Virus record (IMG/VR): IMGVR_UViG_3300027770_000026
Span: 62,001-126,000 of that record
Strand: one strand, 5' to 3'
Length of the DNA: 64,000 bases
Below, piece after piece: positions 8,682-53,238 of this stretch. Position 1 is the first letter of the stretch. Each line of letters starts with the position of its first letter. Under the pieces are notes generated by a model that made no database searches, was not told the DNA's origin, and worked only from the letters and a program-made list of their open reading frames with translations. Position numbers and translations under genes: made by a program.

Positions 8682-8978
8682 GAGGGTTTTTCTGTTGCCA
8701 GGAAAACCCACAAACCCCGGTCTATTCCGCTATTAGGCGGCTAGTGCCATGTCGTAATTGCTATCGTTTGCAGTTACTGTTTTTGCGCTGATTAAGTCAG
8801 TCGCCTCACTGGTAGCCCTTAGTTTATTACTCACCCTGTCAAACCTGGTCGGCCCCAACAACAACACACTTCGTCCTGCAGTACATTCCTAATAGGTGTG
8901 ACACGGTCTGCAAATGTGCTGTTGGTGGAGCCGGGGGGAATCGCACCCCCGTCCAAGATGCCTTTAGTTAAGAGTTTA
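8682..8978 (-). ncRNA. ssrA: circularly permuted two-piece tmRNA
   Basis: Acceptor piece about 8978-8923 ends CGGCTCCACCA; self-pairing intervening segment 8922-8857; coding piece starts GGGGCCG at 8856 (G3.U70 pair); tag GCA(8771)..TAA(8733) = ANDSNYDMALAA; 3' CTG-GCAA-CAG hairpin; TATAAT at 8989-8984. Confidence 0.93.
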
Positions 8979-8996
8979 CTACCATTATACACTTAC

Positions 8997-33593: not shown

Positions 33594-34757
33594 TTAGGCG
33601 TTCTCGACTTGTACGCTGGTGTTGAGTACAGCAGCAGTTAATTTCCAAGGAACTGTAACTCCGCTTGCAAACTCATATGCTGCACCATTAATAGCCTTGC
33701 GTGTCAATAGCGCACGGTGAGCTGTTAGTTTGGTTACATAATATTCGTTTGTGTCGCTGTCAACTGCAACAATAGTTGCTTCACCAGCAGCCGGACCTGC
33801 AGCTACTAGCTTGACTTGGCTTTGGCCTTGTGCAGTGTCTACTAGATAACGACGGCTTGCTTCCTGCTTGATGATATCACCAGCTACTGCTGAACTTCCG
33901 CCAACGACCCATGCAGTGATCTTGATAGCATTTGCCTTAGTTGAAGTTAGTGTGATAGTCTGTAGTGTTACGCTTTGTGTAACGCTTGAACTTGGAGCAG
34001 TATAATAACCTGCACCAGCAGTTGTGATCACTACTGACTTAGCACGATATGTTGGCGTAATTGTTAGACCAGCACCGTATGTATCACATACAGCAGCTTG
34101 TGCACCTGTTACTAGTGCTTCAAATTCGCCACGGTTAACTGGGGTCAGTGCCGTGACTGTGCCGTATGTTACACCGCGTGTGAATGTTGCACCTGTTACA
34201 GTTGAACCACCAATTGCTAGTGGACTGGTTGCAGCTACTGCATCAGCATAGGTAGCATACAGTGTTGCAGCAGTTGCTGTTGTTGGTGCTCCAACGTAGT
34301 AAATCTGTCCGCCAGCAATAGTTGTACCACCAATGGTCAAGTTACCAGTAACTGTTCCAGTAATGTGAATACTGGTACCAGAAATCATTGCAGTTGTAGT
34401 GGTGGTGAAGCTGATCTGAGTGTTAGCAGAGTTAGCTATGCTTGATAGTGCGCTGGATGTTACAGTTGCAGTGTATGTTGATGTTGTTGTACCACCAACA
34501 AAACTGATTGCACCTGCTGTAATAGGATAAGCACGAGTCTGTGTGCCACCAATCGCAACACTTAACACTTCTGATGTGATAGTACCTAGTGCTAGTACAC
34601 CACCTGACGCTACTGGAACGTCAGGGTTACCAAATGTGATCAACGGACGAGTGGTGTATGAACCTGCAGCATTAACTGCTGCGCTTGCTACACCTTCACC
34701 ACCTACTGGTGGGCTGTTTGTATTACCAAAATATTTCTTATGAATCGGGCGTCCCAT
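33594..34757 (-). CDS. virion structural protein (Thr/Ala/Gly-rich)
   Basis: MGRPIHKKYFG start, beta-rich, IIKQEASRRYLV; own late promoter and terminator. Confidence 0.75.
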   Translation of the reverse strand: MGRPIHKKYFGNTNSPPVGGEGVASAAVNAAGSYTTRPLITFGNPDVPVASGGVLALGTITSEVLSVAIGGTQTRAYPITAGAISFVGGTTTSTYTATVTSSALSSIANSANTQISFTTTTTAMISGTSIHITGTVTGNLTIGGTTIAGGQIYYVGAPTTATAATLYATYADAVAATSPLAIGGSTVTGATFTRGVTYGTVTALTPVNRGEFEALVTGAQAAVCDTYGAGLTITPTYRAKSVVITTAGAGYYTAPSSSVTQSVTLQTITLTSTKANAIKITAWVVGGSSAVAGDIIKQEASRRYLVDTAQGQSQVKLVAAGPAAGEATIVAVDSDTNEYYVTKLTAHRALLTRKAINGAAYEFASGVTVPWKLTAAVLNTSVQVENA

Positions 34758-34845
34758 TTTGTTTCTCCTTAAGTGAGTTAAAGTCGTTCTAGGACTTACG
34801 CGGTGGGGACCGCATAACTCTGTTATTGAACAGACAATGTATTTA
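34758..34845 (-). promoter_or_regulatory. late promoter and three-hairpin 5' leader
   Basis: TAAATA 34845-34840; hairpins TCTGTT/AACAGA, TATGCGGT/ACCGCGTA, AGTC/GACT; AAGGAG. Confidence 0.55.
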
Positions 34846-34847
34846 GC

Positions 34848-35849
34848 TTATTTTGCGGAGAAGTGTACTTTGGGCATTGCGTCACGATCGCTACCCCAAA
34901 TCTGTGGAGAAGATACACGCATCTTGTCCATTACGTCTGCAATGTCAGTGAAGTACAGGGAAGTTTGGCTAGGATAGTCTAGCATGAGAATGCCAGAGAA
35001 TCCACTGGTTGCTACGTAATTATAAAAGCTGGACATACCATATCCGCGACGTATACCTTCGAGGTCACCGCGAACTAGTGCGGCATGCAGTTCTGTTGTC
35101 TTATCCGTAAAGCGGAACATGTTCTTGACCACGCTATCAGCTACAGACTTGCGTTGGGGTGCGGTCAGAGTAGGGAAATAGTTTTGCACATAGTCTATCG
35201 CAGTAAGTGATTGCTTGCCCGACAGATCAATGCCAACACTGGTCAGTGTCTGCTCCACGGCCTGTGGCTGAAACTTGGATTTAGCGGGGTCGTACAATCG
35301 ACCAGCATTGACCACACGCGACTTTATTTCAACTGCTTGCTTGCCTACCTGTATGTCGCCGCCGCCTTCGCTGCTGCCTGACCATTTGATATGTGGATTG
35401 AGCAATGCAAATGCTCGCTCGCCAGGACCAATTCCAGCACTTCTGAGCGCACTGTGACTGCTCAGTGAATTAAACAGTGCAACCGACATTGGGCCACCCA
35501 TCATCCAACTGCTAAAAGATTGAATCTGGTTTGTGGCAAGTAGTTCCGATGCATCAACATAGCCCGACGAGCCATAGCTCTTGAGCATGGCTTCTTTGGA
35601 TTCAAAACTGCCCGGTAGTCGTTCCACAATGTCAGTAAATACCGACAGGTGTTCCTTGACCATACCGTTGGCCAATGATATGTTTTCGCAAAGATGTTCG
35701 ATGTGCTTGCGATTAAGAATGGTGTAAACCTGGTTGAGCATTTCCACATCTTCGGATGCATTTACTAGCTTGTTGATTTCCAAACGGATGTCCACTGACA
35801 TCTTGTCAGTATCCTCGATCAGAAACGTATCAAAATCCAAACACTTCAT
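34848..35849 (-). CDS. PD-(D/E)XK restriction-endonuclease-like protein
   Basis: GPGE...GDIQV...VEIK; start MKCLDFDTFLIE (ATGA overlap). Confidence 0.6.
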   Translation of the reverse strand: MKCLDFDTFLIEDTDKMSVDIRLEINKLVNASEDVEMLNQVYTILNRKHIEHLCENISLANGMVKEHLSVFTDIVERLPGSFESKEAMLKSYGSSGYVDASELLATNQIQSFSSWMMGGPMSVALFNSLSSHSALRSAGIGPGERAFALLNPHIKWSGSSEGGGDIQVGKQAVEIKSRVVNAGRLYDPAKSKFQPQAVEQTLTSVGIDLSGKQSLTAIDYVQNYFPTLTAPQRKSVADSVVKNMFRFTDKTTELHAALVRGDLEGIRRGYGMSSFYNYVATSGFSGILMLDYPSQTSLYFTDIADVMDKMRVSSPQIWGSDRDAMPKVHFSAK

Positions 35850-36331
35850 TTTGTACTCCAGACCCATGCAGCACTACGTGCGGCACCAATGGGTGTTTCT
35901 AAGTATGTAGGTATTTTCAGCAGGTCAATGCCCAATGCTTTGCTACACTTAAAGTAGTTATCTTTTCCAACGATTTTTATAAATCCCCGTCCACGATAGT
36001 CCCATCCATCGGGTCGAGGTTCGTTTCCATTGCCATATTTACCACTGTAAACCCGTATGGCAATCTTGTCCTGTTTGTGTTCGTATAGGCTTGCTAGTGT
36101 ATAGTCAGGAAACTGTTTGGGAAAGTGTTTTTGCAAATCTGCAGCAGAATATTTGAAAGTTTCCGTCAATTTAGTTAAATTATCGCTGGCTTTCACAATG
36201 TCAACGATAAAATTGGGGCTATCTATCCTAAATTCTGCCATTGCGTCTAGTATAGCAGGCAGATATTTGTTGGCTAACACAGGTTTGACATTTGGAAACT
36301 GTTCCAAAAATTGTTCTATGGTAATGTGCAT
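35846..36331 (-). CDS. degenerate GH19 lysozyme/chitinase-like protein
   Basis: Y...GNG...DGWDYRGRGFIKIVGKDNY; HES catalytic motif absent. Confidence 0.75.
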   Translation of the reverse strand: MHITIEQFLEQFPNVKPVLANKYLPAILDAMAEFRIDSPNFIVDIVKASDNLTKLTETFKYSAADLQKHFPKQFPDYTLASLYEHKQDKIAIRVYSGKYGNGNEPRPDGWDYRGRGFIKIVGKDNYFKCSKALGIDLLKIPTYLETPIGAARSAAWVWSTK

Positions 36332-36338
36332 GTTGTAT

Positions 36339-37037
36339 TTAATCCAAACTTAGCTGTTGGATTAAAGAATGGTTAATGAATTCACTTAGCTTGTCAAGAT
36401 ATCCCTGATTGCGTAATACCTTAAAGGTCAGGTTCTCTACACCATACTGACCATTCTTTGCAAGGCCTGCTTTGCGCATGTTGTTGATCTTGTCTTTAAT
36501 CTCACGCGCCTCGTCAACATCACCGTGTTCAATCGTTTGATCAACCTGACTCATGTAGCTTTTAACACGGGCACTCACATTGCGATCATTTACTGCTGGT
36601 TGTTCCTTGCGTGGCTTCTCTATCCATTTGTCGCGTAATACTGAATAGCAGCCATTGGTAACATTAACTTGATCGATGTCTTGTGCATATAATTCTACTG
36701 GATGTCCGTGAATTTCAACGGGCATATTAAAATTCCACAAACGCTTTTTAGCGTCAAACAATTGTTCTACCAGTTCAGGATCGCAAGTTAGTTTCTTCTT
36801 GTCAACGATTAGGTGTAAGTCAAAGTCACTGTAGTCTGTATAGTTGTAACTGGCCAGACTGCCCGTTAGCTGTACGTCAACTAGGGGTAGCGGATCTATT
36901 TTAAGACTACGTGCGAATTGAAGTGCAGTTTGCAATAAATGCACCTGCACTTCTTTATCTAGCTTGCCCTGATTCCAAACTTTAGGATTAAGCTTGTCAT
37001 GGAATTGAACATTCTTATCAACGTAGCTCTGTTCCAT
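36339..37037 (-). CDS. pol-beta-superfamily nucleotidyltransferase
   Basis: LTGSLASYNY..YSDFDLH, PVELY.QD, ENLTFK.LR. Confidence 0.8.
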   Translation of the reverse strand: MEQSYVDKNVQFHDKLNPKVWNQGKLDKEVQVHLLQTALQFARSLKIDPLPLVDVQLTGSLASYNYTDYSDFDLHLIVDKKKLTCDPELVEQLFDAKKRLWNFNMPVEIHGHPVELYAQDIDQVNVTNGCYSVLRDKWIEKPRKEQPAVNDRNVSARVKSYMSQVDQTIEHGDVDEAREIKDKINNMRKAGLAKNGQYGVENLTFKVLRNQGYLDKLSEFINHSLIQQLSLD

Positions 37038-37903
37038 TACACTGGATACTTACACTTGCCCTTGGTTTCTTCGGGTGGTAGGTACTTGCCGTAATACTTG
37101 ACAATGAGACAGTTGAGGAAGTCTGTGTATTCGGGAATCTTGCTCAACAGCGCGATATCCGCTTGGTTAATTGCCGAGTCTCGCTCGTCCATGAACTGAC
37201 CTGATTCGTAGTGTAGCTGCCACTTTCTCAGCTTACCGCCTGCCTTGGCCATGATAATGTACAGTGGACCTTGGCTGTGATAGTGGGTAAATCTATTGTT
37301 GGTGTCGCCTGCGGTACACCAGCGTGTGCCCGAGCCAATTCTGCAAGCAGCTTCCTCAGTTTGTGGAATGTAGACCTTGAAGTTAGGAGTGTCAATTACC
37401 TTGTTTGCACCCTGCATTTCCTGACGTGCAACTTCCTTGCCGGATACGTCTTCTGCACCGCCTGACAGGTCGGCTAGGTCGTAGAGATCGTTTAGGCTCT
37501 TTAGCTGTAGTAGGTCAGCAACACCATTGGGATACTTGGCTAACAGTTCTTCATTGCCTGGCTCTTTGAGCTTGGTCAGAATGGTACGCTGCGACTTCTT
37601 GAACTTGTCAATGTCTGTCTTAACTTGGTTGAGGTCTTCCATCTTGAACTGACCAGCAATGTACATGTTAGCAATGAACTGTAGATTCTTGCCCTGTGGA
37701 TCAGGGTCTGCTTTCTTAAGTGCTGCTACTATGTCCCTGGAGTCTGGTTGTTTTCCTGCTGGTGTAGGATATGAATTGTCCTTTTGCGCCGCAGCTTCTA
37801 GCTTGGCCTTGAGGTTAGTGGCAATATAATCTGCACGGTCTTCCAATAGCATGGAAGCCCAGTTGCCACGTGATTCTACAATTCGTATTTCTCTAATCTT
37901 CAT
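37037..37903 (-). CDS. capsid-tagged WCT-motif (PcfJ-like) domain protein
   Basis: MKIREIRIVE; EAAC.IG.GTRWCTA...F.HY...GPLYII...KWQLH...FMD..D. Confidence 0.7.
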   Translation of the reverse strand: MKIREIRIVESRGNWASMLLEDRADYIATNLKAKLEAAAQKDNSYPTPAGKQPDSRDIVAALKKADPDPQGKNLQFIANMYIAGQFKMEDLNQVKTDIDKFKKSQRTILTKLKEPGNEELLAKYPNGVADLLQLKSLNDLYDLADLSGGAEDVSGKEVARQEMQGANKVIDTPNFKVYIPQTEEAACRIGSGTRWCTAGDTNNRFTHYHSQGPLYIIMAKAGGKLRKWQLHYESGQFMDERDSAINQADIALLSKIPEYTDFLNCLIVKYYGKYLPPEETKGKCKYPV

Positions 37904-37932
37904 ACCAAATTCTCCATTATGCTTTATTTAGT

Positions 37933-39231
37933 TCAGAGGTTCTTAATATATTCTTTATACTTTGCGGGACTTTGCTTTTGTAGCAAACGGTCAAACGCTG
38001 GCCACCCGTTATTGTCACGATTGCGGCTATAATTTGCAATACTGCCTGCAGCAATTGTGCCACTTATAACAGCATTGACCATAATGGGAGCTATCACTTT
38101 TTCAAGTTGTACTAGAAAACGCTCTGAGGCATCATTATAATCTGCAGATTCTGTTAGTTCGGCTGCAAAATCTAATAGTTGCCGCGGCGAACTGTATTTT
38201 ACTATAGTGGGTATGCAGCCAGTCCATATGGAGCTGGTGCCGTGCTCGCTTACTAACGCATTTAGCGAATATACTACAAGGTCCTCAGCATCTTGTTCTT
38301 TAACTGCATGATCCAATAGCCAGGGTTCAAATGCTTTCACTCTATCCCCAATGAATCTCACATACGCTAATGCTGTTCTAGTATCGTTGAGTAGCATGAC
38401 CGCATGCTCTACAAAGGCATTACGATCAATGCCTTCTTCATCCTCGCTAGATGCTACATAGTTGTCTAGCAGTGTTTTTAGCAGTGCTTGATCACGTTCT
38501 ATTATCCCGTATATTGCTGGATTTATTTTATTATCAAAGTCAGTATATTCTAGGTAACCTGCTGCTGCTTGCGGGTCATTTAATTTCACAATATAGGGTT
38601 CAAGTTCAGGCAATCTGCTACTGGTATAATCACTTTTTTCATTGAGATATGCTATAAGCGATTGTGGAGACTTTGCAATTGCAGGTAATGCTTCCTTCCA
38701 CAACCTGTCGGTTAGTAACCGAGATTCGTAGTGGGCAATGCCCGCAGGGTCTTGCATTATGCGAGCTTGTATTTCGGATGTGGGCTTTATCATTGCAGCA
38801 TCGATATAGTACACCAGCTGCCTGACTGTTCCTGAAGCCATTATGGTGTTTAGGGCTTCAGGCCATACCATTGGTTTGTTAGTATTTTGAGCCCGTCTCC
38901 AAATGTATACCTCAATGAGTTCTGGATCGTTTACTATGAGTTTTTCAATTGACGGATCCCTCTTAGTGCCATTACTCATTCCACCATTCATAGTATATGC
39001 AAGTAATGCTTTCTGAAATACGTTTGAATCCTTTATATACAAGGGCATCCAGGCTAGTAGTTCCCCGCGGCGGGTTTTGCGATCCTCGGGGGTTTTTTCG
39101 CGATAATTGATCCGATGTAGCTTGCACTGCTTCCGCCAAACATATGACGGAATATGCTGTTCTCGCGTTTTATAACCCACTAATTTAGTGGGCGCAGTGT
39201 GAAATTTAAATAGGTCTATTGAATCAAACAT
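37933..39231 (-). CDS. helical-repeat protein, LYxYH array member 7
   Basis: DLFKFHTAPTKLVGY; WPEA, RLPELE, WPAFD repeats. Confidence 0.8.
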   Translation of the reverse strand: MFDSIDLFKFHTAPTKLVGYKTREQHIPSYVWRKQCKLHRINYREKTPEDRKTRRGELLAWMPLYIKDSNVFQKALLAYTMNGGMSNGTKRDPSIEKLIVNDPELIEVYIWRRAQNTNKPMVWPEALNTIMASGTVRQLVYYIDAAMIKPTSEIQARIMQDPAGIAHYESRLLTDRLWKEALPAIAKSPQSLIAYLNEKSDYTSSRLPELEPYIVKLNDPQAAAGYLEYTDFDNKINPAIYGIIERDQALLKTLLDNYVASSEDEEGIDRNAFVEHAVMLLNDTRTALAYVRFIGDRVKAFEPWLLDHAVKEQDAEDLVVYSLNALVSEHGTSSIWTGCIPTIVKYSSPRQLLDFAAELTESADYNDASERFLVQLEKVIAPIMVNAVISGTIAAGSIANYSRNRDNNGWPAFDRLLQKQSPAKYKEYIKNL

Positions 39232-39234
39232 ATG

Positions 39235-39981
39235 TTATCTTCTTGCTATCTTGTTTTCTTTGTCGGCTACCCACTGTCTATGCAGCTGATCAATTTCACT
39301 TTGACTTGTGCCAGTATGACGCAGCGCATTATAGAAATATGGATACCATTCGTCAGAATTGGCTTTAACAATGGGCTCTAACTCCGGATGACGCACGCCT
39401 GTTTCCCAAGTAAAATCAATGACCAGACGTGTACTCTGTTTAATTATATCCATTAATTTACTGGGTATTTGTATATCATTTTCAAAAAGATATCCTGCAT
39501 ACTCAATTAGTATAGTATTGCGAGTATCTCTTTTATATGAGTCAGTTGTGTCCATATTCGTCAGTACGTTTTCCAATTCAGGCCAACGCTCCCCAATGGC
39601 CTCTTTGACATATTTCATTATTATTTCCGACTTGCTGATGAGCTTGAAATTTAATAGTCTGGGTTCTATTCCGGGCAATCTTTTTCCTAGTTTAGAAGCA
39701 TATCCCACAGCAAGATGTGGACTTAGTGCTAGTACTTCTTGCACATCTAGGCCAAGATCACCTGTTTCTATTGAATACCACATGGCGTCTGCTGCATCGT
39801 GCATGAATAGTGGTTTACGTTTAACTATCTGAGATCGTTCCATGGGAATTTTATCACGGAAGAATCTCACAAAGTCAGGATGTATGTCCATTACAGCCTT
39901 TGCTGCAGTTAAAGTCTCAGGATTGCTGTGGTAATTGTACAGCATAAAATCAATTTCTTGCGATGGATCCATCTCTTCCAT
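39235..39981 (-). CDS. helical-repeat protein, LYxYH array member 6
   Basis: MLYNYHSNPETL; RLPGIE, RWPELE, RHPELE. Confidence 0.8.
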   Translation of the reverse strand: MEEMDPSQEIDFMLYNYHSNPETLTAAKAVMDIHPDFVRFFRDKIPMERSQIVKRKPLFMHDAADAMWYSIETGDLGLDVQEVLALSPHLAVGYASKLGKRLPGIEPRLLNFKLISKSEIIMKYVKEAIGERWPELENVLTNMDTTDSYKRDTRNTILIEYAGYLFENDIQIPSKLMDIIKQSTRLVIDFTWETGVRHPELEPIVKANSDEWYPYFYNALRHTGTSQSEIDQLHRQWVADKENKIARR

Positions 39982-39982
39982 A

Positions 39983-40213
39983 TTATTTGTCCTTGTCCGC
40001 TACGGGCTTTTCGCCTGTGAGATAGGGCTTGCTAAACCACAGTTTAAACCATGCATCAGTACCGGGCTTGATATTTTTCTCGCGTTCTATTTTACGCTTC
40101 TCGGTGCCAGTCATGCTGACATTGCTGCCAGGGTATTTACTCCAGTCTACTGGCTTGGAGCTGTTAGCATAGTGATCCAACCCCGCTAGTTTACGTAGTT
40201 CATCGAGGTTCAT
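39983..40213 (-). CDS. small phage protein interrupting the array
   Basis: LDELRKLAGL...NIKPGT.AWFKLWF. Confidence 0.75.
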   Translation of the reverse strand: MNLDELRKLAGLDHYANSSKPVDWSKYPGSNVSMTGTEKRKIEREKNIKPGTDAWFKLWFSKPYLTGEKPVADKDK

Positions 40214-40319
40214 ATTTTTTGATATCCCAATTTAAATTCACGGCCATTAAATCCGTAACGAGCAATGGCACTAATTTTTTATCCACATGATACTTGTATA
40301 AATTTAATACTTGTTTCAT
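40200..40319 (-). pseudogene. truncated LYxYH array member (39 aa)
   Basis: ATG 40319 overlaps the upstream TGA; MKQVLNLYKYHVDKKLVP...EPR*; no repeats. Confidence 0.6.
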
Positions 40320-41095
40320 CGGAAAACCCTTCCTTTAAATCCGCGCTCTTTTATCAATTGATATCTTGCTGAAAGATTGTGTAATTGCGCTAGATACAAA
40401 TTCCACGGTGAGTCAAAGTGTGGATAATCTTTAAGTTTTACTGAAGGTGATTCTTCATCCCAGTCGATGTCAACCGGTAGATCCATGTAATCTTCCTCGG
40501 CAGTTTCCAACCACTCTCGCCTATTAGGATTCCAATTGTAGATAGCATCCTCTAGCTCGGGTATACGTTCCCATCGTTTGCCGCCTGTGACGGCCTGATG
40601 GAAAGCTGTTACAGGATCGTCACTTATGCGGGCTAAGACTTTTTTCACAAAGTCAGGATACTTTTTTATCAGATCTTTAAGCTCAAAATGCCCAAGATAT
40701 TCGTTTAGTATTTCTGGTGCGGCTTTTATTATCTGATCAAAATACTCAGGTGCAACTATACCTAGCACATCACTGGTATAATCCGCTATCGATTCGGGAT
40801 CAGTTGCTATAATCTGCTCTACTGCGCCACGTCGTGGCCACAACTGGTCTGACACACCCTGCTTTGTGGTGCAATTCTGATAGATTTTTGCCGAACGATA
40901 TGCTATGTCTGGATCTTTTCCCAGTACGGACTGATATTTGTGTATTGCAGCAACTGCCATTTTTGCCTCGGTTGGCCCTCTCCAATAGTCAGTGTTGGCT
41001 ACTTGTTTAAACGCAATAGTTGGCACAGTTAATTGCTTATCATAGCCAATTAACTCGTTGGGAGAGCTGTGATATGTATATAAATTAAGTCTCAT
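40316..41095 (-). CDS. helical-repeat protein, LYxYH array member 5
   Basis: Start re-set to MRLNLYTYHSSPNELIGY; LGKDPDIA, LWP, RIPELE. Confidence 0.8.
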   Translation of the reverse strand: MRLNLYTYHSSPNELIGYDKQLTVPTIAFKQVANTDYWRGPTEAKMAVAAIHKYQSVLGKDPDIAYRSAKIYQNCTTKQGVSDQLWPRRGAVEQIIATDPESIADYTSDVLGIVAPEYFDQIIKAAPEILNEYLGHFELKDLIKKYPDFVKKVLARISDDPVTAFHQAVTGGKRWERIPELEDAIYNWNPNRREWLETAEEDYMDLPVDIDWDEESPSVKLKDYPHFDSPWNLYLAQLHNLSARYQLIKERGFKGRVFR

Positions 41096-41804
41096 AACCG
41101 GCTGCGCTTGCGTCTGATACTGCTTGTCTTCCGTCTTGGAAGGCCAAAGTACTAAGGTAATATTCCCATGCTGTTTTGTAAGATGTTGTGAGGCCATGGT
41201 GTCGTGTAAAGCTAAGGTGATTTAACTGAGGACTATTCTTAATGAGATCCTGCCAGTCATCCTCGGACATGCGCAATAATACGGGCTCTATTACAGTATT
41301 ACGCCGCGTGGACCGAGCAGAATATGCAATTGAAGCTGCAATATCTTTACTGAGCATTTTCAGCACCTTATATTTAAAATCAGGATCCACGTAATAGTTG
41401 TCTTTTACCAGATAGCCTAGATATTTTGCCACAAATACTGGATCCAGTTGACCTAGTATGTCTAGATATCTTGGATCCCGTTGTAATTTACTGCCAATAT
41501 GATATTTTAAATGCTCGTCACGATGCTGGGGCGAACGCAACAGTGCCATTTCAACTTCGCCACCAACAGGCCATAAATTATCAATTTCGCTATTTTTGTA
41601 TATTTCCGCTGCACGTATTGCAACGTCTAGGTCTTTACCCAGTACATCCTGATACTGTTTCATTAGTCTGACTTTTGCGTCAGTGCCAGGTATGTTTCTA
41701 ATTTTATCAAATAGAATTGTAGGGATCATCTCATGGGATTCATACCCTATTAATTCCATTGGATCAGTGTGAAATGCAAAAATGTTTCGTTTAATATTTG
41801 TCAT
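41085..41804 (-). CDS. helical-repeat protein, LYxYH array member 4
   Basis: Start re-set to MTNIKRNIFAFHTDPMELIGY; YQDVLGKDLDVA, LWP. Confidence 0.8.
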   Translation of the reverse strand: MTNIKRNIFAFHTDPMELIGYESHEMIPTILFDKIRNIPGTDAKVRLMKQYQDVLGKDLDVAIRAAEIYKNSEIDNLWPVGGEVEMALLRSPQHRDEHLKYHIGSKLQRDPRYLDILGQLDPVFVAKYLGYLVKDNYYVDPDFKYKVLKMLSKDIAASIAYSARSTRRNTVIEPVLLRMSEDDWQDLIKNSPQLNHLSFTRHHGLTTSYKTAWEYYLSTLAFQDGRQAVSDASAAGYET

Positions 41805-41805
41805 T

Positions 41806-42651
41806 TTATTTTGTAAATCTCGATGCACGGCGTCGTGCTGCTTCTGCTTCACGTGGGGTTAGCATGCTCAGATAAAGGTCCCACGCAGTTTCATCTGACG
41901 GGAATCCTGTTTCACCGCGCCAATTTTTATTTTTATTAAAATATATTATGCGTTCTGCTTTTAGGAAAGGTGTACGCACATCTGCAATTTGTACATACAT
42001 TAAGCTTGCTAGCACATCTTGTGCTATAATATCTTCTAGTTTGCCTCTGAATTCAGGTGGAGTTCCAGCCCAATCTTCGTGTCCATGATCTTCAAGATAA
42101 TCCACTGCATCTCGCGGAGATAACTGTAATAGTGTGGGCTCTAGTTCGGGAATATGGCGCGTGACCACGAACCTTGCAAAGCGCGAAGCAAATACAGGAT
42201 CCTGTTTAATTAATTCAAATTCACGACTGTTCTTGGGCCATATGAGGTCTTTACCGTTGCCTTCATATCTAACGGATAAAGGCATTTGGTTTACTTGATC
42301 AAGAATATTGCGTAATGTTTCTTTTGGTCCAGGATATACTGCGGTACTGCGTAATAATTGCTGTATAAGGTTGAGTAATTCCTTGCTGGCACTTTTACAT
42401 AATCGTGTAATATGATATACTTCCTCAACCGATTCGGCATAACGATGTCGATTATTAATTAATTTAGTTAGAACTCTAAAAGTATTTTCCACAAGAAGTA
42501 TTAGGTCGTTGTCATGTGGCCCTCTTATTAATTTATTTTGTAGTGCGTTTGTCTGCATACTAAGTTGATTTTTAATATAGGGCAGCAGATTCATGCGCTC
42601 TTTATAGCCACTTAATTTAGAGGGTGTATCGTGATAGTCGTATAGTCGCAT
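41806..42651 (-). CDS. helical-repeat protein, LYxYH array member 3
   Basis: MRLYDYHDTPSKLSGY; IWP, QDPVFA, HIPELE. Confidence 0.8.
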   Translation of the reverse strand: MRLYDYHDTPSKLSGYKERMNLLPYIKNQLSMQTNALQNKLIRGPHDNDLILLVENTFRVLTKLINNRHRYAESVEEVYHITRLCKSASKELLNLIQQLLRSTAVYPGPKETLRNILDQVNQMPLSVRYEGNGKDLIWPKNSREFELIKQDPVFASRFARFVVTRHIPELEPTLLQLSPRDAVDYLEDHGHEDWAGTPPEFRGKLEDIIAQDVLASLMYVQIADVRTPFLKAERIIYFNKNKNWRGETGFPSDETAWDLYLSMLTPREAEAARRRASRFTK

Positions 42652-43406
42652 TAGTTTTGATGCTCGCGCTTGTTATCAATTTGTCGCATTCTCAGCGTCA
42701 AATCATCCGCGTCACTGGGATTCTTCATGCCTTTGGCTATTTCTCCCACTGCCCATCTGATCAATGCCCCACTGTTTGGATCTGCAGCATATTCTTGCAT
42801 TAGTAATTCCTCGCCCTCGGCCCAACGTTTTTTAATCATAGCTAGGAATACTGCTGTTGCCGTTACGTCTGACAACATGCGTTCACGCGCACGTTCCCAA
42901 AAACTTGCAGGCGTTTGGTTGTATTTCTTTCCTTCAAATTGTGCAGCATACAATGCAATATCCATTGCAGGAGCTGTGAGAATCCGCTCGTTGTATTGTG
43001 AATCCAATGGCAAATCAACTATGCGTTCCGCGTATTTCATACGATCTGATATGGTTCCGTCTTGATCAATTCTGTTGCGCATGTCAACATTAACGCCAAA
43101 CTTTTCCATGTATCTTATCAGATTTGTTAAATCCCGTGCATTGGCTGCTGCAAATTTTTCTTCGTTTCCGTATAACGGGGCACCTTGATACATGAAGGCA
43201 AATTCTGCAGCAAGATCAGGATCTTGCGTTATTGTTTTTCTATAATGACGCAGTGCCTGTTCATGATCGCCGGTAAGTTTGCGACTTGAACTTGCCGACG
43301 GGACCAAGGAGCGCAATCGCTGATATGCTATCGCAGGTATTTCACTTTGATAGTCATCGCCTACTAAGTGCGGGCCAGTATAATAATTGTATAGATTTAA
43401 AGGCAT
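42651..43406 (-). CDS. helical-repeat protein, LYxYH array member 2
   Basis: TAAATA 4 nt before MPLNLYNYYTGPHLVG; QDPDLA, KRWAEGE. Confidence 0.8.
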   Translation of the reverse strand: MPLNLYNYYTGPHLVGDDYQSEIPAIAYQRLRSLVPSASSSRKLTGDHEQALRHYRKTITQDPDLAAEFAFMYQGAPLYGNEEKFAAANARDLTNLIRYMEKFGVNVDMRNRIDQDGTISDRMKYAERIVDLPLDSQYNERILTAPAMDIALYAAQFEGKKYNQTPASFWERARERMLSDVTATAVFLAMIKKRWAEGEELLMQEYAADPNSGALIRWAVGEIAKGMKNPSDADDLTLRMRQIDNKREHQN

Positions 43407-43436
43407 GCAGTATTTAGCTGCAGGTTGGGATATGGG

Positions 43437-44168
43437 TTAGTCTCCCGGTACGTAACCCCACTTCTTAGCAGCTTCCGTACGTTCAGGAAAATCTGCTAGG
43501 TATGTTCTAACATAGTTGGCTTTTACTAATGTGCGCTCGCCTTCGGGCCAAGGTGCTTTGACCACACGCTGAATATAGGTCAGTGTAGGGTATCCCATTC
43601 TGAGGATAGTGGGTTCTGCTGCAGGCCAACGTTTACCCATTATCTGAGCGTAGAAAACCAAAAACTTGTTTTTATATTTTAGTTCGTCGTGTGTTCTTTC
43701 GGGTAAATCTAGTAGAATTTTTTCCAAGTCTGGCCAGGATTTTAAACCCACTTGCTGCATATAGAACATGGTATGATGCAGGGTGTCTGAATCGATATTA
43801 CTTTTTATTATTTTCTGTATTGCTAATTTTTCAAATTCTGGCCAATGACCTTTAAAAAATTGATGTACGTATGGTGCTAACTGTTGAATTTCAACATCTA
43901 AATCCTTATGCAATATTGCATGTTCAATTGCAGGCGATCGTTTATTGGCAATTGCAGTAGCATAAAACAATGCTTGACCAACATCGCCGGCAGCAGCCAG
44001 AGCTTTTTGCAGATATTCATCTTGCTGCTCGTATGCTTCTTCAGGAAAATCATCAGGATCTAATTCTCCCCCGTAGTATGACGCAAGAGTACGAAGCTGC
44101 GCACGGTCTGAACCAATTAGCTGCTTGGGATCATTATGATATCCCCATAAGTTCATACTTAAACTCAT
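43437..44168 (-). CDS. helical-repeat protein, LYxYH array member 1
   Basis: MNLWGYHNDPKQLIG; five Y...(R/H/S/P)(W/S)PxxE repeats. Confidence 0.8.
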   Translation of the reverse strand: MSLSMNLWGYHNDPKQLIGSDRAQLRTLASYYGGELDPDDFPEEAYEQQDEYLQKALAAAGDVGQALFYATAIANKRSPAIEHAILHKDLDVEIQQLAPYVHQFFKGHWPEFEKLAIQKIIKSNIDSDTLHHTMFYMQQVGLKSWPDLEKILLDLPERTHDELKYKNKFLVFYAQIMGKRWPAAEPTILRMGYPTLTYIQRVVKAPWPEGERTLVKANYVRTYLADFPERTEAAKKWGYVPGD

Positions 44169-45100
44169 GACTCATCCAGTTCCCATGGACCGTAGTTTTT
44201 AGTCTTAACCATCCATTTAAGTGCAGCAGTTCTGTCGTATTTGCGATACTGCCCTGGGTCGTTGGCATTTACTTTGCCCAATTCGTAGTACTGTTCCTTG
44301 CGCATCACAATGTTTCTGCCATTACTGGTATCAAGTACAACATCGCCTACTTCATTCCAAGCATGCTCATGGCGCACACCTTCGATGCCACCCTGTCCGG
44401 TAACCATAGCGTGTACTAGCACTAGCCCCGGTATCTCATCGCGTATTACGTTCTTACCCGCAGCCTTAAAGCAATCGCCTAGTTCTTTGGCCTCACGTAG
44501 TTTCTTCTTACGCATTAGCAGTGCAGGATATCCATCACGGTTCACTTTGCTACCAAACTTAGCGGCTTCAATGGAGGTTTGATTTAATCCCACATCCTGT
44601 GTAACATTCTGCGGAGTAATACGTCCCACACCTTCGTTAACCATGCGCTTAAACAATGGTCCACGCTTTAAAGCTCGTGTACGCTCCAGGTACATACCCT
44701 GGTTCAGTGCTTCAATTATCTTGGGAGTTAGGTCACGATTACGTATGTCGTCCCTAAAGAACAGGTGTGTCTCTATAGGTATATTGCCTTCTAGCTCTTG
44801 CACAATCTGCATGCGATTACGACCTTCGTGGCTCACTACTTGTGCGGGCTCGGAATAGTCGCTGGAATCAAACCAAGCTACGGGTATTTGTATAATAAGG
44901 AAAGGTGCGCCAATTGCAGCACCGTCCTCGATAGCTTTTTCTACGTGTGTGTTTCTGTTGTCACGCGGCAAAAATGCAGCAAGGTCTAGAAATACAGATG
45001 GCTTCATTAGCACACGAAGACCGCGGTAGTCTACTTCTTGGTTATAGGGCGTTGCGCCCAGACCCTTACGGTTGTCAATTGTTACTTCGCTGATCTTCAT
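44165..45100 (-). CDS. capsid-tagged polyprotein: ParB/Srx-like domain, short module, transglutaminase/papain-like domain
   Basis: MKISEV; HEGRNR; VNE|GVGRI; LRE|...GDCF...HAW.E...VLD. Confidence 0.6.
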   Translation of the reverse strand: MKISEVTIDNRKGLGATPYNQEVDYRGLRVLMKPSVFLDLAAFLPRDNRNTHVEKAIEDGAAIGAPFLIIQIPVAWFDSSDYSEPAQVVSHEGRNRMQIVQELEGNIPIETHLFFRDDIRNRDLTPKIIEALNQGMYLERTRALKRGPLFKRMVNEGVGRITPQNVTQDVGLNQTSIEAAKFGSKVNRDGYPALLMRKKKLREAKELGDCFKAAGKNVIRDEIPGLVLVHAMVTGQGGIEGVRHEHAWNEVGDVVLDTSNGRNIVMRKEQYYELGKVNANDPGQYRKYDRTAALKWMVKTKNYGPWELDES

Positions 45101-45720
45101 TACAATTCCTCGGCAAACCAGGGATCAATTACTACCAGTGTGCCGTCTCTGCGCCGCATGACGTTTTCTGTGTGCAAGTCCCAGCCTAAATTATTTAGCA
45201 ATCCGGTGTTGTATAACAGTTGCAGTAGAACATACAGCACATGATACTTTTCCCAAGCACGTGGCTTAATACGTCTGATACTGTTTATTATTTCAGGATT
45301 GTCATACGTAGCCCATTCTGCGGAATCCTGCAGCTTGTGGTGTACCTGCGCCCACTTTATGTCCTTGCGAGCGTATTCACTCAGCTGCCATACTACAGCT
45401 TCTTGTGTGCTGCCCTTGCGCACGGGATATAGTCGTTCCATTGCGATACGGTGATAGTGTATGCCATTGTGTATAAATGGTTCATGATGTTTGCCGCTGG
45501 GTAGTGTATGGAATCTTGGTAGATTTTCAATATCACTGTTACGTTGGCAAAAGTGATAGAACTTCTTAAAGGTGCGTACAGCATGGCTTAGTTTACCTTC
45601 GGGCATGAGTATTTTAATCACATGCTCGCTGCTACTGGTCCACACGCTAGCGTCTGCGCCATGCCCAAGCTTTTTATAGCCCTGACGATGCAGATCATGC
45701 TCTAGATCTTCTAATATCAT
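45100..45720 (-). CDS. Ser/Thr protein kinase-like protein
   Basis: LGHGADASVW, VIKI, MERL, DLHTENVM, VIDP. Confidence 0.85.
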   Translation of the reverse strand: MILEDLEHDLHRQGYKKLGHGADASVWTSSSEHVIKILMPEGKLSHAVRTFKKFYHFCQRNSDIENLPRFHTLPSGKHHEPFIHNGIHYHRIAMERLYPVRKGSTQEAVVWQLSEYARKDIKWAQVHHKLQDSAEWATYDNPEIINSIRRIKPRAWEKYHVLYVLLQLLYNTGLLNNLGWDLHTENVMRRRDGTLVVIDPWFAEEL

Positions 45721-46982
45721 TTGGGCAATTTAACGGGAGTTTGTTTACGAGTCATTAGTGCAGCAAGATCGCTGCGATTAATGTAGCCAATTCTATACTG
45801 TTCCATTGGCGGTAAATCTCGCATAGATTTAAATTTGGCACTTGGTACACTGTATATCAGCTTGTAGACCTTGGTTAGGTATTCTTGTCGATATGCTTGC
45901 GGATCCACAGCAGCTTCTAATGCTACTACCAATCGGTTCACTGTGTCAACGATTTTTTCAACGGGTTCACTAAGCCAATCCCCGCCCGCTGAACGTAGTT
46001 CAATGCGGTCAGACTGAAAGTTAACACTAAGTCTACCAAATATTCGTAGAGCTTTTTGTGCTGCAGCCATATCACCTGTACGTAGTGCATCGGCGATTTC
46101 TAGTTCAGCTGCGGGAGATGCTATTTTACCCGATGCGCGAACACGATTAGCTGCGCTGGGAGCATAGCTATTAAGTTCTCTCTTAAATTGTTTCAGCACA
46201 TATTCATCGCCAAGCAGTGTAATCAACTTGAGATAATCCAGCTTGTCGTAGTTTGGTACGCTGACGTTAATGTGCAGTCCGCAAGTGCGATTGGTTTCTG
46301 CTTTTACTTTATATGCATAAAATTTAACATTATTAATGGCGTCTATAATGTCGTCTACAGCCATGGGATAGCTGACAATCTCCGCACCAATCCATTCTTC
46401 ATTACCGTCGTGGTGTTGCACAGTGCTGTCCGTTTCAAAGGTAAAATGATTGGGTTCACGTGGTCCACCATGTCCATTAAATGGTACAGTGGCATAGCCT
46501 GTTATTTTTGAAAAGCGATCTGCAGCTACTTTTATTTCTTCTAGTGCAGTACTACTAGTGGGATTTTCATAAGGCCAATCCACAATGTGGTCATACCCTT
46601 CATATACTGTCAAAGTATAATCTAGGTCTTCAGCTTCTAGAAAATCTTGCTGTTCATTTTGTACTGCATTACGAATAAATTGTTCGTAGTCATCATCTTC
46701 AATATCCAGTTCTTCTGATAGTGCTACCGCCCAGTCGTGTAGTCTACGTTCAAGCTGGGCGTTCAGTCTCGCAATTGATCCACTGCTATTAACCCCTAAT
46801 TCCCCAAAGAACTCTAGTATTTCGTCAATGCTGGTAACACGACGATTGTAAGTAAAGTCTGGAACAATTACATTATCATCACGTGGAACCAGCATCTCAA
46901 ATTCAATGCCAACTAATGCCTTGCTGCCATAAGCCTGCGCAGCAAGCCGCTGCGAACTCATTTTGATCTCGCTGAGTCTCAT
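45717..46982 (-). CDS. putative amidoligase (COOH-NH2 ligase)
   Basis: GIEFE, ETDST, EIVSYP, TCGLHINVS, IELRSAGG; MRLSEI start. Confidence 0.82.
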   Translation of the reverse strand: MRLSEIKMSSQRLAAQAYGSKALVGIEFEMLVPRDDNVIVPDFTYNRRVTSIDEILEFFGELGVNSSGSIARLNAQLERRLHDWAVALSEELDIEDDDYEQFIRNAVQNEQQDFLEAEDLDYTLTVYEGYDHIVDWPYENPTSSTALEEIKVAADRFSKITGYATVPFNGHGGPREPNHFTFETDSTVQHHDGNEEWIGAEIVSYPMAVDDIIDAINNVKFYAYKVKAETNRTCGLHINVSVPNYDKLDYLKLITLLGDEYVLKQFKRELNSYAPSAANRVRASGKIASPAAELEIADALRTGDMAAAQKALRIFGRLSVNFQSDRIELRSAGGDWLSEPVEKIVDTVNRLVVALEAAVDPQAYRQEYLTKVYKLIYSVPSAKFKSMRDLPPMEQYRIGYINRSDLAALMTRKQTPVKLPK

Positions 46983-48124
46983 TTTTTGTCTAGTTTCAAC
47001 GCAGAACGTGCAATTGCGCTCTTAGCAGTTTCCTCGATTGGTACGCAATTGTTCACACGCACACCATCTTTTACTTTGGTCTTAGGGTTGCCAATCTTTT
47101 TACCTTTCCAGCATTTGGGATCTAGTCGTGTTTTGATTGCTTTCTTTTCCAACAAGTTCTGCTGTTGTTCTGGTGGGCTTTCTTCGTCCCCGCTAGCCCA
47201 CGATATTGGAAAGATACGGCCGAGATTTAATATTTCGTGCCCAACATCATATTCTGTTCCGATGAACTCAGATGCTTTAGACTTTTTCTTAATTTCATCT
47301 GCATTCTTAGCCATTAGTTCCCCTATCTTTTTCATAAGACCGGGAAACAAACTGGCAAACCTTAGATCGTTAATGTCTAGACTATGTCTGTTTTCCTGTT
47401 CCGCATTTACTAACTGACGGGTTGACGCATGCAATTGCCACTTGCCGTTTTTATTCTCAAGATTTGTTTTGTCTGCAATCATGATAATTGGACCGTCAGG
47501 CATGTATCTACGTGACCAAGTTAGTCCGTTGCTACCGCCCGTACAGAAGTTGGCCTGTATGCCTTCAGCATTATTGAACGTATAGCAAGAACCATAGTTG
47601 TAGGGAATCATTATATAGAAACGATCATCGTTCATTAGCACAGTTTCGCTTCTCTCACGCTTGTGCTTTTCAACCATTTCTTGATTCTTAATTTGATCCA
47701 ATTGCGAGCTGTACTTGCGCATGGCTTTTTGTATGTCTTCAATGTTTTTAAATCTATTAAAGTCCTGATCCTTAGGCTCTAGCAAAGACCGTATGTTAAG
47801 TGCATGCCATTTGCCCAGCGTGTCTGCAGCTTCGCCGCTGATGTCTTCCCAGTTTGCATGTCCGTTTGCATACTGGCGTGCAACCCATAGGTCAAACTTA
47901 CCGCCCGACAAGTCACCATAGTTACTGGTGCTCATTACTCGATCCAGCATGTCGCTCCAGGCTTGTACGATTTTCTGTTCACTGGGACGTGGTCCCAACT
48001 TGGCAACTACATAGGGAGGAAGTGTGCCATCTGTATTCCAGTTAATCGCTATGAACTTGGCTAGTCTGGGATCTGCTTTTAGCTTTTCTGCAACGTTTGC
48101 TTCTAGTATTTTTTCTAATCTCAT
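46979..48124 (-). CDS. capsid-tagged FCT-motif (PcfJ-like) protein with C-terminal CWKG...NCVP module
   Basis: MRLEKILE; ANFCTG...Y..DGPI...KWQLH; LLE|...CWKG...VNNCVPIEE. Confidence 0.7.
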   Translation of the reverse strand: MRLEKILEANVAEKLKADPRLAKFIAINWNTDGTLPPYVVAKLGPRPSEQKIVQAWSDMLDRVMSTSNYGDLSGGKFDLWVARQYANGHANWEDISGEAADTLGKWHALNIRSLLEPKDQDFNRFKNIEDIQKAMRKYSSQLDQIKNQEMVEKHKRERSETVLMNDDRFYIMIPYNYGSCYTFNNAEGIQANFCTGGSNGLTWSRRYMPDGPIIMIADKTNLENKNGKWQLHASTRQLVNAEQENRHSLDINDLRFASLFPGLMKKIGELMAKNADEIKKKSKASEFIGTEYDVGHEILNLGRIFPISWASGDEESPPEQQQNLLEKKAIKTRLDPKCWKGKKIGNPKTKVKDGVRVNNCVPIEETAKSAIARSALKLDKK

Positions 48125-52401: not shown

Positions 52402-53238
52402 TTAGATGTTATCTAGTTTCTGAGCAAATTCACTTAGAATTTGATCGTCAATACTTTCTTTGACAATTTTAACCTGCTGCGGGCCAAGTTTCTTCATGCC
52501 GCCTGCCTTTTGTGTAGCTTGTCTTGCTTGTGCTGCTTGCCCGCGTTGTGCAATTGTTTGGCGTTCGGGTTTAGGAGCAGCTGGTTGTGGTTCAGGCGCA
52601 GCGGGTGCTGGTTGTGGTTGTGGTTCAGGCGCAGCGGGTGCTGGTTGTGGTTGCGGGGCAGGTGCAGCAGGTGCTGGTTGTGGTTGTGGTTCAGGCGCAG
52701 CGGGTGCTGGTTGTGGTTGCGGGGCAGGTGCAGCAGGTTGTGGTTCAGGTGCTGCTTGCTGAGGTGTAGGTTGTAGTTGTGGTGTAGGTTGTACTTGGGG
52801 AGCAGCGGTTTGTGGCTGGTCCTGTGCAGCTTGCTGATTGCCTCCACTTTGTGGATTTGCTACAGCATCTCTACGAGAAGACTGCTGTAAATATCCAACT
52901 AGTACTTTACCCAGCTGGCGCATGCTTAATTTTGCATCACCGTCAATTCCTGCTTTCTGTATAGCAGTATTCATTATGCCCTGATCAAATCTACCTTGCT
53001 GGATGCTAACTACATTAACGAGATCATTGGCGCTTACGGCCCGTTCGCCCGATTGCCCCATCCATTTCTTTACCTGCTTGTATAGATTGTTAGCTTCGTG
53101 CGCTACATCTAGCTTACCTAAGGCTTTCTGACTGCCAAGTGTTGCGCCTAGCTTATATAAGCCTCGCTTCCATAGCGGCACTGCACCTATCTCATCGAGA
53201 AATTCTTGTTCTTTAACAGCAAATTCAGAAATCTTCAT
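52402..53238 (-). CDS. capsid-tagged protein with Pro/Gln/Ala linker
   Basis: MKISEF...LDE; PQPAPAAPE repeats; late promoter and GGAG. Confidence 0.75.
   Translation of the reverse strand: MKISEFAVKEQEFLDEIGAVPLWKRGLYKLGATLGSQKALGKLDVAHEANNLYKQVKKWMGQSGERAVSANDLVNVVSIQQGRFDQGIMNTAIQKAGIDGDAKLSMRQLGKVLVGYLQQSSRRDAVANPQSGGNQQAAQDQPQTAAPQVQPTPQLQPTPQQAAPEPQPAAPAPQPQPAPAAPEPQPQPAPAAPAPQPQPAPAAPEPQPQPAPAAPEPQPAAPKPERQTIAQRGQAAQARQATQKAGGMKKLGPQQVKIVKESIDDQILSEFAQKLDNI
52604..52735. repeat. perfect 2 x 66-bp tandem duplication within the PQPA linker
   Basis: 52604-52669 is identical to 52670-52735. Confidence 0.9.

Follow-up and report, generated by a model that had tools for sequence, protein, structure and literature searches.

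A putatively capsid-tagged phage protein and an adjoining array of repeat proteins predicted to dock on it

Introduction

Why does a phage gene whose product starts with a putative capsid tag lie directly beside a series of genes for untagged repeat proteins, and could their products work together? This question is raised by a locus in a 64,000-nucleotide stretch of the IMG/VR virus record IMGVR_UViG_3300027770_000026 (positions 62,001 to 126,000; hereafter the window), which belongs to a genome of 265,892 bp. The original prediction, made from the letters of the window, had described two tagged WCT/FCT paralogs flanking a repeat-protein array and had proposed a split system in which a packaged module is aimed by interchangeable repeat adaptors docking through LYxYH. 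We use WCT, a name coined in this analysis, for the domain of these two proteins, which has no Pfam model.

Results

Two distant WCT paralogs flank the array

Both genes lie on the minus strand at the predicted coordinates, and their products carry the predicted motifs: TRWCTA, GPLYII and KWQLH in the protein encoded at 37037-37903 (288 aa, WCT1), and ANFCTG, GPIIMI and KWQLH in that encoded at 46979-48124 (381 aa, WCT2). In pairwise BLASTP they were 26% identical across 86 aa (E = 2e-4), and a WCT family profile made without both window proteins matched WCT2 at E = 2e-21. Judged from these comparisons, WCT1 and WCT2 are true but distant paralogs, as had been predicted, and they are the only two WCT copies in the entire genome. 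The order of transcription is WCT2, three genes, the array, a 29-nt gap and WCT1. WCT1 consists of an N-terminal tag, a helical domain (residues ~20-165), a remotely PcfJ-like alpha/beta domain (~166-245) and C-terminal predicted docking helices:

37037..37903, minus strand: WCT1, putative hub of 288 aa; open reading frame, AF2 model with pLDDT 89.8, member of the partner-associated clade
37874..37903, minus strand: WCT1 N-terminal tag MKIREIRIVE (residues 1-10) with an I-x-E site, similar to a T4 capsid targeting sequence; based on tag enrichment and low pLDDT
37055..37210, minus strand: WCT1 residues 232-283, predicted docking surface, comprising a hairpin after Q229-x-H231 and the helices LSKIPEYTDFLNCLIVKYYGKYL; based on the interface of the complex model

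The stretch 232-283 is invariant or nearly so across stand-alone WCT1-type proteins.

The array proteins share an N-terminal motif

The array comprises seven paralogs, all on the minus strand, which are the genome's only members of their family, and contains a further small open reading frame:

37933..39231, minus strand: array member 1, 432 aa, N-terminus ..DLFKFHTAPTKLVGY
39235..39981, minus strand: array member 2, 248 aa, N-terminus ..MLYNYHSNPETL, three RxPELEP-like motifs
39983..40213, minus strand: 76-aa open reading frame within the array, with a counterpart in loci L003 and L007
40316..41095, minus strand: array member 3, 259 aa, counted from the MRLNLYTYHSSPNELIGY start
41085..41804, minus strand: array member 4, 239 aa, N-terminus ..NIFAFHTDPMELIGY
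41806..42651, minus strand: array member 5, 281 aa, N-terminus MRLYDYHDTPSKLSGY; modelled alone and in complex
42651..43406, minus strand: array member 6, 251 aa, N-terminus MPLNLYNYYTGPHLVG
43437..44168, minus strand: array member 7, 243 aa, N-terminus ..MNLWGYHNDPKQLIG, RWPAAEP and HWPEFE motifs retained

The 76-aa frame occupies the same place in the arrays of L003 and L007, and its first 60 residues are identical there. The array proteins indeed lack the putative capsid tag; all seven start with LYxYH..P..L.GY instead. Six-frame scans of the genome found this motif at the start of an open reading frame exclusively in the seven array genes, and a looser pattern added one doubtful match. The AF2 model of array member 5, the one array protein modelled, was all-alpha (pLDDT 85), an alpha-solenoid of degenerate repeats. 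Since the N-terminal motif had a pLDDT of 73-83 in this monomer model, it may cap the solenoid instead of being a free peptide. Searches with the model in PDB, AFDB and the Atlas returned only generic HEAT/TPR and designed solenoids. No Pfam match to DUF4116 (PF13475) was detected in the array proteins at E≤0.1; this domain occurs only in fused relatives. The idea that LYxYH is a remnant of the last WCT strand (KWQLH..QFMD) was rejected, as an hhalign comparison between the array and the WCT family gave nothing and the motif followed the domain in 0 of ~270 WCT proteins.

The complex model places the motif on WCT1

Complex prediction, which the original prediction had named as a check, was carried out with WCT1 and array member 5. 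The ipSAE values were 0.73, 0.78 and 0.81 in three runs versus 0.00 for the best of three controls, a score that is the model's own confidence and was obtained with unpaired custom alignments for this one pair. Of 80 solved complexes, 58 reach the pass mark, as do 2 of 110 mismatched pairs. In the modelled interface, residues 1-23 of array member 5, including motif positions L3, Y6, H7, L13 and G15, faced residues 232-283 of WCT1, bearing in mind that such a model may set two chains side by side whether they bind or not. The C-terminal helices of WCT1 are therefore predicted to bind the LYxYH..P..L.GY N-terminus of the neighbouring repeat proteins.

The pair recurs in other phages

WCT1 homologs with 40-51% identity had motif-led genes directly beside them in loci L005 (three genes), L008 and L009. 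Among the 79 IMG/VR loci kept from our scan, partners (one to six motif-led genes within 4 kb) accompanied 13 of 15 stand-alone WCT1-type genes versus 0 of ~66 long or fused WCT genes, and the presence of a partner was associated with that of the docking helix (p = 5.6e-9). All 17 partner-associated WCT genes fell into one clade (support 100/99). In close relatives the synteny is retained and the array is larger, with 11 members in L003; the WCT1-type genes of L014 and L010 had no partner within 6-10 kb. The co-occurrence across genomes that was to be expected of a split system is thus strong and specific among divergent phage contigs.

The window array belongs with the partners of the RWPEAEP type: the NLYxYH lead is present in seven of seven members, the repeats are homologous, and the array adjoins a stand-alone WCT1-type gene. 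In hhalign, its family matched the canonical partners with a probability of 99.2% (E = 2.3e-19). P0059 and P0054, two fused WCT proteins, also matched the partner repeats with their C-termini (99.2% and 98.5%), and the survey of fused versus split architectures found the same repeat family both in the split type and fused to WCT domains. As far as sequence comparison can tell, the two-part WCT1-adaptor module is a recurrent and previously undescribed arrangement in many uncultured phages.

WCT2 probably stands outside the module

The genes upstream of the array are as follows:

44165..46982, minus strand: three genes located between the array and WCT2, all with a tag-like N-terminus; regarded as context
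44165-45100, minus strand: weakly ParB_N-like gene
45100-45720, minus strand: weakly Kinase-PolyVal-like gene, whose start MILEDL is a tag variant
45717-46982, minus strand: Amidoligase_2-like gene
46979..48124, minus strand: WCT2, tagged paralog of 381 aa (MRLEKILE) from another WCT clade that is widely conserved

WCT2 belongs to a distant, separate clade with its own C-terminal extension and without the conserved docking helices, and no array was found near the one relative that we sampled from its 1,654-protein family. It is probably an independent family member outside the docking module, and its position three genes upstream looks like synteny inside a cluster of tagged genes. The split hub-adaptor idea, originally extended to both paralogs, is thus well supported for WCT1, where an interaction is predicted at LYxYH and co-occurrence is specific, and is not supported for WCT2.

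The WCT family is large and remotely PcfJ-like

With 12,348 cluster representatives (clusters at 50% identity), mostly viral, the WCT module ranks with the larger families of phage proteins that have neither a Pfam model nor an assigned function. C196, T197, Y208 and Q229 (WCT1 numbering) are invariant and H231 is near-invariant; this conservation suggests a putative active site in the WCT domain. Frequent fusion of the domain to variable repeat regions at the C-terminus, as stated in the original prediction, was borne out: in other phages, the module is joined to DUF4116, LRV, LRR, ankyrin, WG, HEAT or "RWPEAEP" repeats, and multi-module proteins are also found, e.g. P0193 with five WCT units.

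The Pfam HMM of PcfJ-like proteins (PF14284) matched none of 58 WCT members at E≤1, none of 65 further members at E≤0.01 and nothing in the genome at E≤10. Foldseek comparison of the WCT1 alpha/beta domain (AFDB, BFVD) retrieved named PcfJ-like proteins with E-values of 2.6e-4 to 1e-2 and probabilities of 0.75-1.0 at TM <0.3; in the ESM Atlas, PcfJ was present in 93 of the 100 nearest named clusters, and the score of the ESM features was 0.92. We take the module to be remotely PcfJ-like at most. Fold searches of WCT1 in PDB (Foldseek, VIA-align) gave nothing significant. A GNAT-like fold was considered and dismissed, as its Z of at most 4.7 is under the level that the tool deems meaningful. 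Catalysis by WCT is a guess, given that the domain resembles neither a known enzyme nor any solved structure; PcfJ itself has no known activity, and the likeness to it therefore says nothing about the WCT mechanism. No function was found in the literature on PcfJ, PcfJ-like proteins or DUF4116. Pfam and PHROGs searches with all proteins of the region yielded nothing useful beyond weak TPR matches and phrog_28193, and GenBank phages matched neither the region in megablast nor WCT2 in tblastn.

The N-terminal tag is enriched and points to probable packaging

The pattern M-[KR]-h-x-[ED]-h was present at 17 of 251 ORF N-termini versus 5 of 1,533 internal Met positions (odds ratio 22, p = 2.8e-11), so that the tag noticed originally is a real and enriched sequence feature. 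Most tags are followed by a hydrophobic-x-Glu site. Both paralogs start with a peptide of about 10 residues that includes such a site: WCT1 with MKIREIRIVE followed by S, and WCT2 with MRLEKILE followed by A, the latter being a near variant outside the pattern that was listed through a second one. Tags of the same kind are common across the WCT family. The tag is also carried by a NUDIX-like neighbour and by a membrane-anchored GH19 protein. Its likeness to the T4 capsid targeting sequence was judged against what we take to be the T4 sequence.

Outside the window, the genome encodes a Peptidase_S77 prohead protease (90.6 bits) and a Gp23 capsid protein (335 bits). Annotation of the fused PA5oct homolog EST35_0205 lists it among the structural proteins detected by ESI-MS/MS, and it is not discussed in the PA5oct paper. 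One WCT1 homolog is located among head genes. A scan for the T4 late promoter TATAAATA showed no enrichment and no sites in the region, and scans for sigma-70 promoters and terminators showed no enrichment. For encapsidation in T4, a stretch of ten N-terminal residues is enough (PMC9026906); the internal proteins of this phage are a varied set that counters host defences (PMC9026906, PMC3012670). We infer that the N-terminal motif is a capsid tag and that WCT1 probably carries it as a signal for head packaging.

Discussion

The reading that we prefer, and for which we see the case as evenly poised, is that WCT1 is the tagged hub of a two-part module whose array solenoids are docked, interchangeable adaptors carried into the capsid. 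The N-terminal decapeptide would direct WCT1 into the prohead of this giant T4-type phage, from which it would be ejected into the host with the DNA. Its C-terminal helices and the hairpin beside the Q-x-H strand are predicted to bind the (N)LYxYH..P..L.GY motif of the seven alpha-solenoids, which would recreate non-covalently the architecture of WCT plus variable repeats that is fused in thousands of relatives. As the untagged repeat proteins would dock on a tagged WCT1, they would enter the capsid on it. They may serve as specificity subunits that diversify fast and present host targets to the remotely PcfJ-like domain, the putative active site according to its conserved residues. That the injected hub is an enzyme, drawing its substrate specificity from changeable alpha-solenoid adaptors that are held by their N-terminal peptide and carried into the capsid by the hub, is possible, and we put it forward tentatively.

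The docking evidence fits equally well a rather unlikely alternative, in which WCT1 is only a loading and ejection handle whose tag attaches it to the scaffold core, the repeat proteins are effectors that block host proteins, e.g. those of defence, and the Cys and His residues have a structural role or hold a cofactor. In its favour, every variable part consists of binding repeats and none is an enzyme, the searches with WCT turned up no enzyme fold, and T4 internal proteins are stoichiometric inhibitors (PMC3012670). However, a pure handle would have no need for a Cys-Thr, Tyr and Gln that never vary, and a His that hardly does, over more than 12,000 divergent clusters, a 10-residue tag alone is enough for packaging in T4, and the structural matches include named PcfJ-like proteins. 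Such proteins are also encoded on conjugative plasmids, which have no capsids, and this too counts against a mere carrier. It is less probable still that complexes of WCT1 and array proteins are not packaged and act in the infected cell after ordinary expression, with the tag serving translation, localisation or turnover. The missing late promoter would agree with this, as would the tagged NUDIX-like and GH19 proteins, which are not necessarily head proteins; the annotation of the PA5oct homolog as a virion protein, the T4-type head machinery, the hydrophobic-x-Glu site after most tags and the WCT1 homolog among head genes speak against it.

Could the array proteins instead restrain a harmful WCT1 enzyme in the producing cell, like the immunity arrays beside polymorphic toxins? 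Paralog arrays do adjoin a domain with conserved Cys and His, and the predicted interface reaches residues 232-237, directly after the Q-x-H strand, but we regard this as quite improbable: the same repeats are covalently fused to WCT in other phages, as immunity proteins seldom are, other family members have LRR, Ank or DUF4116 repeats in that position, and no toxin domain was recognised. Finally, the adjacency might be a relic of an old fission without any functional link, and the interface an artefact of a model that can juxtapose chains regardless of binding. This is barely credible, since the predicted interface is made up of two motifs that are found only in the split clade and are conserved down to 40% identity, and the adjacency survives changes in gene order, strand and copy number.

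The hub-adaptor reading is best compared with the internal proteins of T4. Like WCT1, IPI, IPII, IPIII and Alt carry a short N-terminal tag with a hydrophobic-x-Glu site on otherwise unrelated proteins, and a T4-type prohead protease and Gp23 are encoded in the same genome, as in our phage. Their cargo is diverse, fast-evolving and thought to act on the host (PMC3012670, PMC9026906), as we propose here. However, each T4 internal protein has its own tag, whereas in the module predicted here a single tagged hub would hold seven untagged proteins by means of a docking peptide, and neither WCT1 nor the array shares sequence or fold similarity with the internal proteins or Alt. PcfJ-like proteins (PF14284) have an alpha/beta domain that may resemble that of WCT; WCT proteins additionally have a helical domain at the N-terminus and a tag of their own. 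In polyvalent proteins, the domains are predicted packaged early effectors of phages and conjugative elements, and their kinase, ParB-like, Pol-beta NTase-like and lysozyme types also occur in this neighbourhood (Iyer et al. 2017, PMC5512222). That work mentions neither PcfJ nor DUF4116. Polyvalent proteins are single giant polypeptides with 2-15 effector domains each, whereas WCT1 is a single-module protein and the domains here are encoded by separate genes, each with a tag-like N-terminus. By analogy only, SCF/F-box and IpaH-type LRR enzymes also pair one conserved module with many interchangeable target-choosing repeat domains; they have no homology to the WCT system, and neither ligase nor any other chemistry is implied. 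In the Dar system of phage P1, antirestriction proteins are packaged hierarchically, and some head proteins need others for their incorporation (dependence on DarA and Hdf). Such dependent incorporation resembles our proposal, but the P1 components are single genes without homology to it and without a docking-peptide array.

The split clade offers a handle on the WCT family, with a defined predicted interface, a natural series of swappable partners and a prediction of packaging. If our reading is true, a docking peptide allows phages to load proteins that lack a tag into the head, and more host targets would come within reach by duplication of adaptor genes, with no need to duplicate entire effectors. 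Foreign proteins might then be packaged in laboratory phage capsids with the docking pair as a tool. The module would be a non-covalent, expandable counterpart of the WCT-repeat fusions and a new route to diversify the cargo delivered with the DNA.

Genomic setting of the two WCT genes

The virus record comprises 265,892 bp at an estimated completeness of 80%; its bases 62001-126000 form the window. T4-type head genes are present in the genome, namely those for the major capsid protein (Gp23, 335 bits) and for a prohead protease (Peptidase_S77, 90.6 bits). The beta-type tmRNA, for which ARAGORN gave the tag peptide ANDSNYDMALAA, suggests that the host may be a betaproteobacterium. From 33.5 to 52 kb of the window, every gene lies on the minus strand and gaps are nearly absent. 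The two WCT genes (WCT is our own domain name) were found as originally described and are the only WCT copies in the whole genome; seven paralogous genes, the array, and three other genes lie between them.

Features of the window; "tagged" refers to the N-terminal pattern M-[KR]-h-x-[ED]-h, likened to the T4 capsid targeting sequence
8659-9038, -, beta-type tmRNA gene (Rfam beta_tmRNA, 124.5 bits)
34755-34834, -, cis-regulatory RNA, Rfam 'freshwater-2' (64.7 bits, above the gathering score of 49.9)
35846-36331, -, first of two GH19 lysozyme-like genes
37037-37903, -, WCT1, 288 aa
37933-44168, -, array of seven helical-repeat paralogs
39983-40213, -, 76-aa ORF inside the array, beginning MNLDELRKLAGL
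45717-46982, -, tagged Amidoligase_2 (PF12224)-like protein, 421 aa (ESM feature score 0.95; structure TM 0.77)
46979-48124, -, WCT2, 381 aa
49134-50090, -, second GH19 lysozyme-like gene, tagged, with a predicted membrane segment

The Amidoligase_2-like protein had no match in Pfam despite its likeness by ESM features and structure. The other genes between WCT2 and the array showed weaker likeness to a polyvalent-protein kinase and a ParB N-terminal domain, and the gene downstream of WCT1 in a relative had a faint NTP_transf_2 match; kinase, ParB and NTase domains recur in predicted packaged effectors (PMC5512222). Because it is tagged and has a predicted membrane segment, the second GH19 protein may be a virion-associated lysin. 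The 'freshwater-2' motif lies directly upstream of a 387-aa gene (33594-34757). During the terminator scan, we noticed three copies of the 15-mer GGCGCAGCGGGTGCT at 52595-52708, spaced 33 and 66 nt, within a tagged 278-aa gene (52402-53238). Among the tagged proteins here, WCT2 (47000-47110, ..CWKGKK..NCVP) and a 666-aa protein (50091-50200, ..HHCE..YWSCRKW) have short basic C-terminal tails that contain Cys, and a similar tail is found on a 144-aa protein in another phage contig (L010); the tails may represent a small motif in common.

The WCT family

Word-indexed search found 62 relatives of WCT1, and exhaustive profile search yielded 12,348 cluster representatives at E<=0.001, of which 3,020 reached E<=1e-30. 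Residues C196, T197, Y208 and Q229 do not vary, W195, K227, H231 and E89-D90 hardly do, and the conserved Cys/His site may be catalytic. The domain is not covered by any Pfam model. The AF2 model of WCT1 (pLDDT 89.8) consists of a floppy N-terminus, a helical domain, an alpha/beta domain and three helices, and had no match in the PDB. Foldseek searches of AFDB and BFVD repeatedly gave named PcfJ-like proteins among their weaker matches, and 93 of the 100 nearest named ESM Atlas clusters carried PcfJ. The PcfJ HMM did not match, and this relation is therefore classed as remote and not as one of membership. WCT1 and WCT2 are indeed paralogs, if distant ones (BLASTP E=2e-4); a family profile built without either of them scored WCT2 at E=2e-21.

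The original statement that this domain is often fused to variable repeats was right: in other phage proteins the WCT module precedes DUF4116, LRV, LRR, ankyrin, WG, HEAT/Arm or RWPEAEP repeats, with two to five such units in tandem within some giant proteins. P0193 (1844 aa) and 25 further proteins have WCT modules, two to five in each, that alternate with WG, DUF4116, HEAT or LRV repeats; such proteins may be genuine polyproteins or the product of merged gene calls.

Conserved adjacency of WCT1 and motif-led genes

Each of the seven array proteins opens with (N)LYxYH..P..L.GY. Scanning the whole genome in six frames found the motif at ORF starts in no other gene, apart from one doubtful match with a looser pattern. 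The one member modelled (41806-42651) is an all-alpha solenoid (pLDDT 85), and zero to three recognisable RxPELEP-type motifs survive per member.

In two close relatives (L003 and L007), WCT2 is again followed, in this order, by three genes, the array, WCT1, an NTase-like gene and GH19. The array has 11 members in L003, where it is complete, versus seven here, and nine up to the locus end in L007. The 76-aa ORF occupies the matching position in both (7631-7861 and 20599-20829, respectively), with its first 60 residues identical. Genes adjoining WCT1 homologs of only 40-51% identity open with the same motif (L005: MINLFKYHSSPQTL, MLNPFAYHSNPDKL and MLNIYNYHNQPQTL; L008: VLNLYRFHAQPQQL; L009: ..DIYKYHSNPEKL), followed in all these examples by canonical YA..VI.GRWPEAEP.I repeats.

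The scan retained 79 IMG/VR loci, and in these co-occurrence was strong: one to six motif-led genes (partners) lay within 4 kb in 13 of the 15 distinct cases of a stand-alone WCT1-type gene, and one of the two partnerless cases ends 126 nt past the gene. None was found near about 66 long WCT forms. Partners were present in 10/11 cases with the docking-helix pattern versus 4/70 without it (p=5.6e-9). The L025 partners (5265-5888, 6753-7298 and 7186-7908) read MKLHEM-NLY.LHSNPETL, with a tag-like hexapeptide ahead of the docking motif unless the second Met is the true start.

Predicted docking and phylogeny

WCT1 was modelled with array member 41806-42651 using custom alignments. This one pair scored 0.73, 0.78 and 0.81 in three runs, whereas the best of three controls scored 0.00; an interaction is thus predicted. 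The pass mark is reached by 58/80 solved complexes and 2/110 mismatched pairs, counts that are only approximate with custom alignments. The predicted interface comprises residues 1-23 (the motif) and 70-76 of the array protein, and residues 211, 232-237 and 245-283 of WCT1, i.e. its C-terminal helices and the hairpin that follows Q-x-H. Throughout the split clade, these docking helices show little or no variation. No fused relative among about 270 WCT proteins carries the docking motif after the domain, and an intramolecular contact is therefore not what the model reproduces.

A maximum-likelihood tree of 94 WCT domains placed all 17 partner-associated genes in one 22-row clade (support 100/99) and WCT2 in a distant 7-row clade. 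By hhalign, the array family of the window shares homology with the canonical partners (99.2%, E=2.3e-19), and so do the C-termini of two fused WCT proteins with the partner repeats (P0059, 99.2%; P0054, 98.5%). Thus, the same two parts exist joined and separate.

Likely packaging and the proposed split system

The tag occurs at 17/251 ORF starts versus 5/1,533 internal Met positions (p=2.8e-11). A hydrophobic-x-Glu site comes after it in most cases, and the tagged genes are concentrated at 28-53 kb of the window. The WCT2 start, MRLEKILE, is a near variant caught by a second pattern, and many WCT proteins elsewhere have a tag-like start, e.g. MRAYEFITEA. Ten N-terminal residues of the T4 protein IPIII are enough for encapsidation, with cleavage governed by residues 8 and 10 (PMC9026906), and the T4 internal proteins are diverse anti-defence proteins with only the tag in common (PMC3012670). 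The homolog in phage PA5oct, a fused 482-aa form starting with MKLFEV, is annotated as a structural protein (ESI-MS/MS), and one WCT1 homolog sits between the Gp23 and gp13 genes. Because of this evidence, packaging into the phage head is likely.

The original prediction held that both WCT proteins are aimed by repeat adaptors docking through LYxYH. Chief among the competing readings is one in which WCT serves purely as a carrier, with the repeats as the effectors. For WCT2 the proposal is not supported, and this protein, which belongs to another clade, is probably a bystander. For WCT1, a split system of hub and adaptors is well supported, since four independent lines converge on it: the interface predicted by modelling, the conservation of adjacency, the grouping of partner-associated genes in a single clade, and the occurrence of the two parts both fused and separate.
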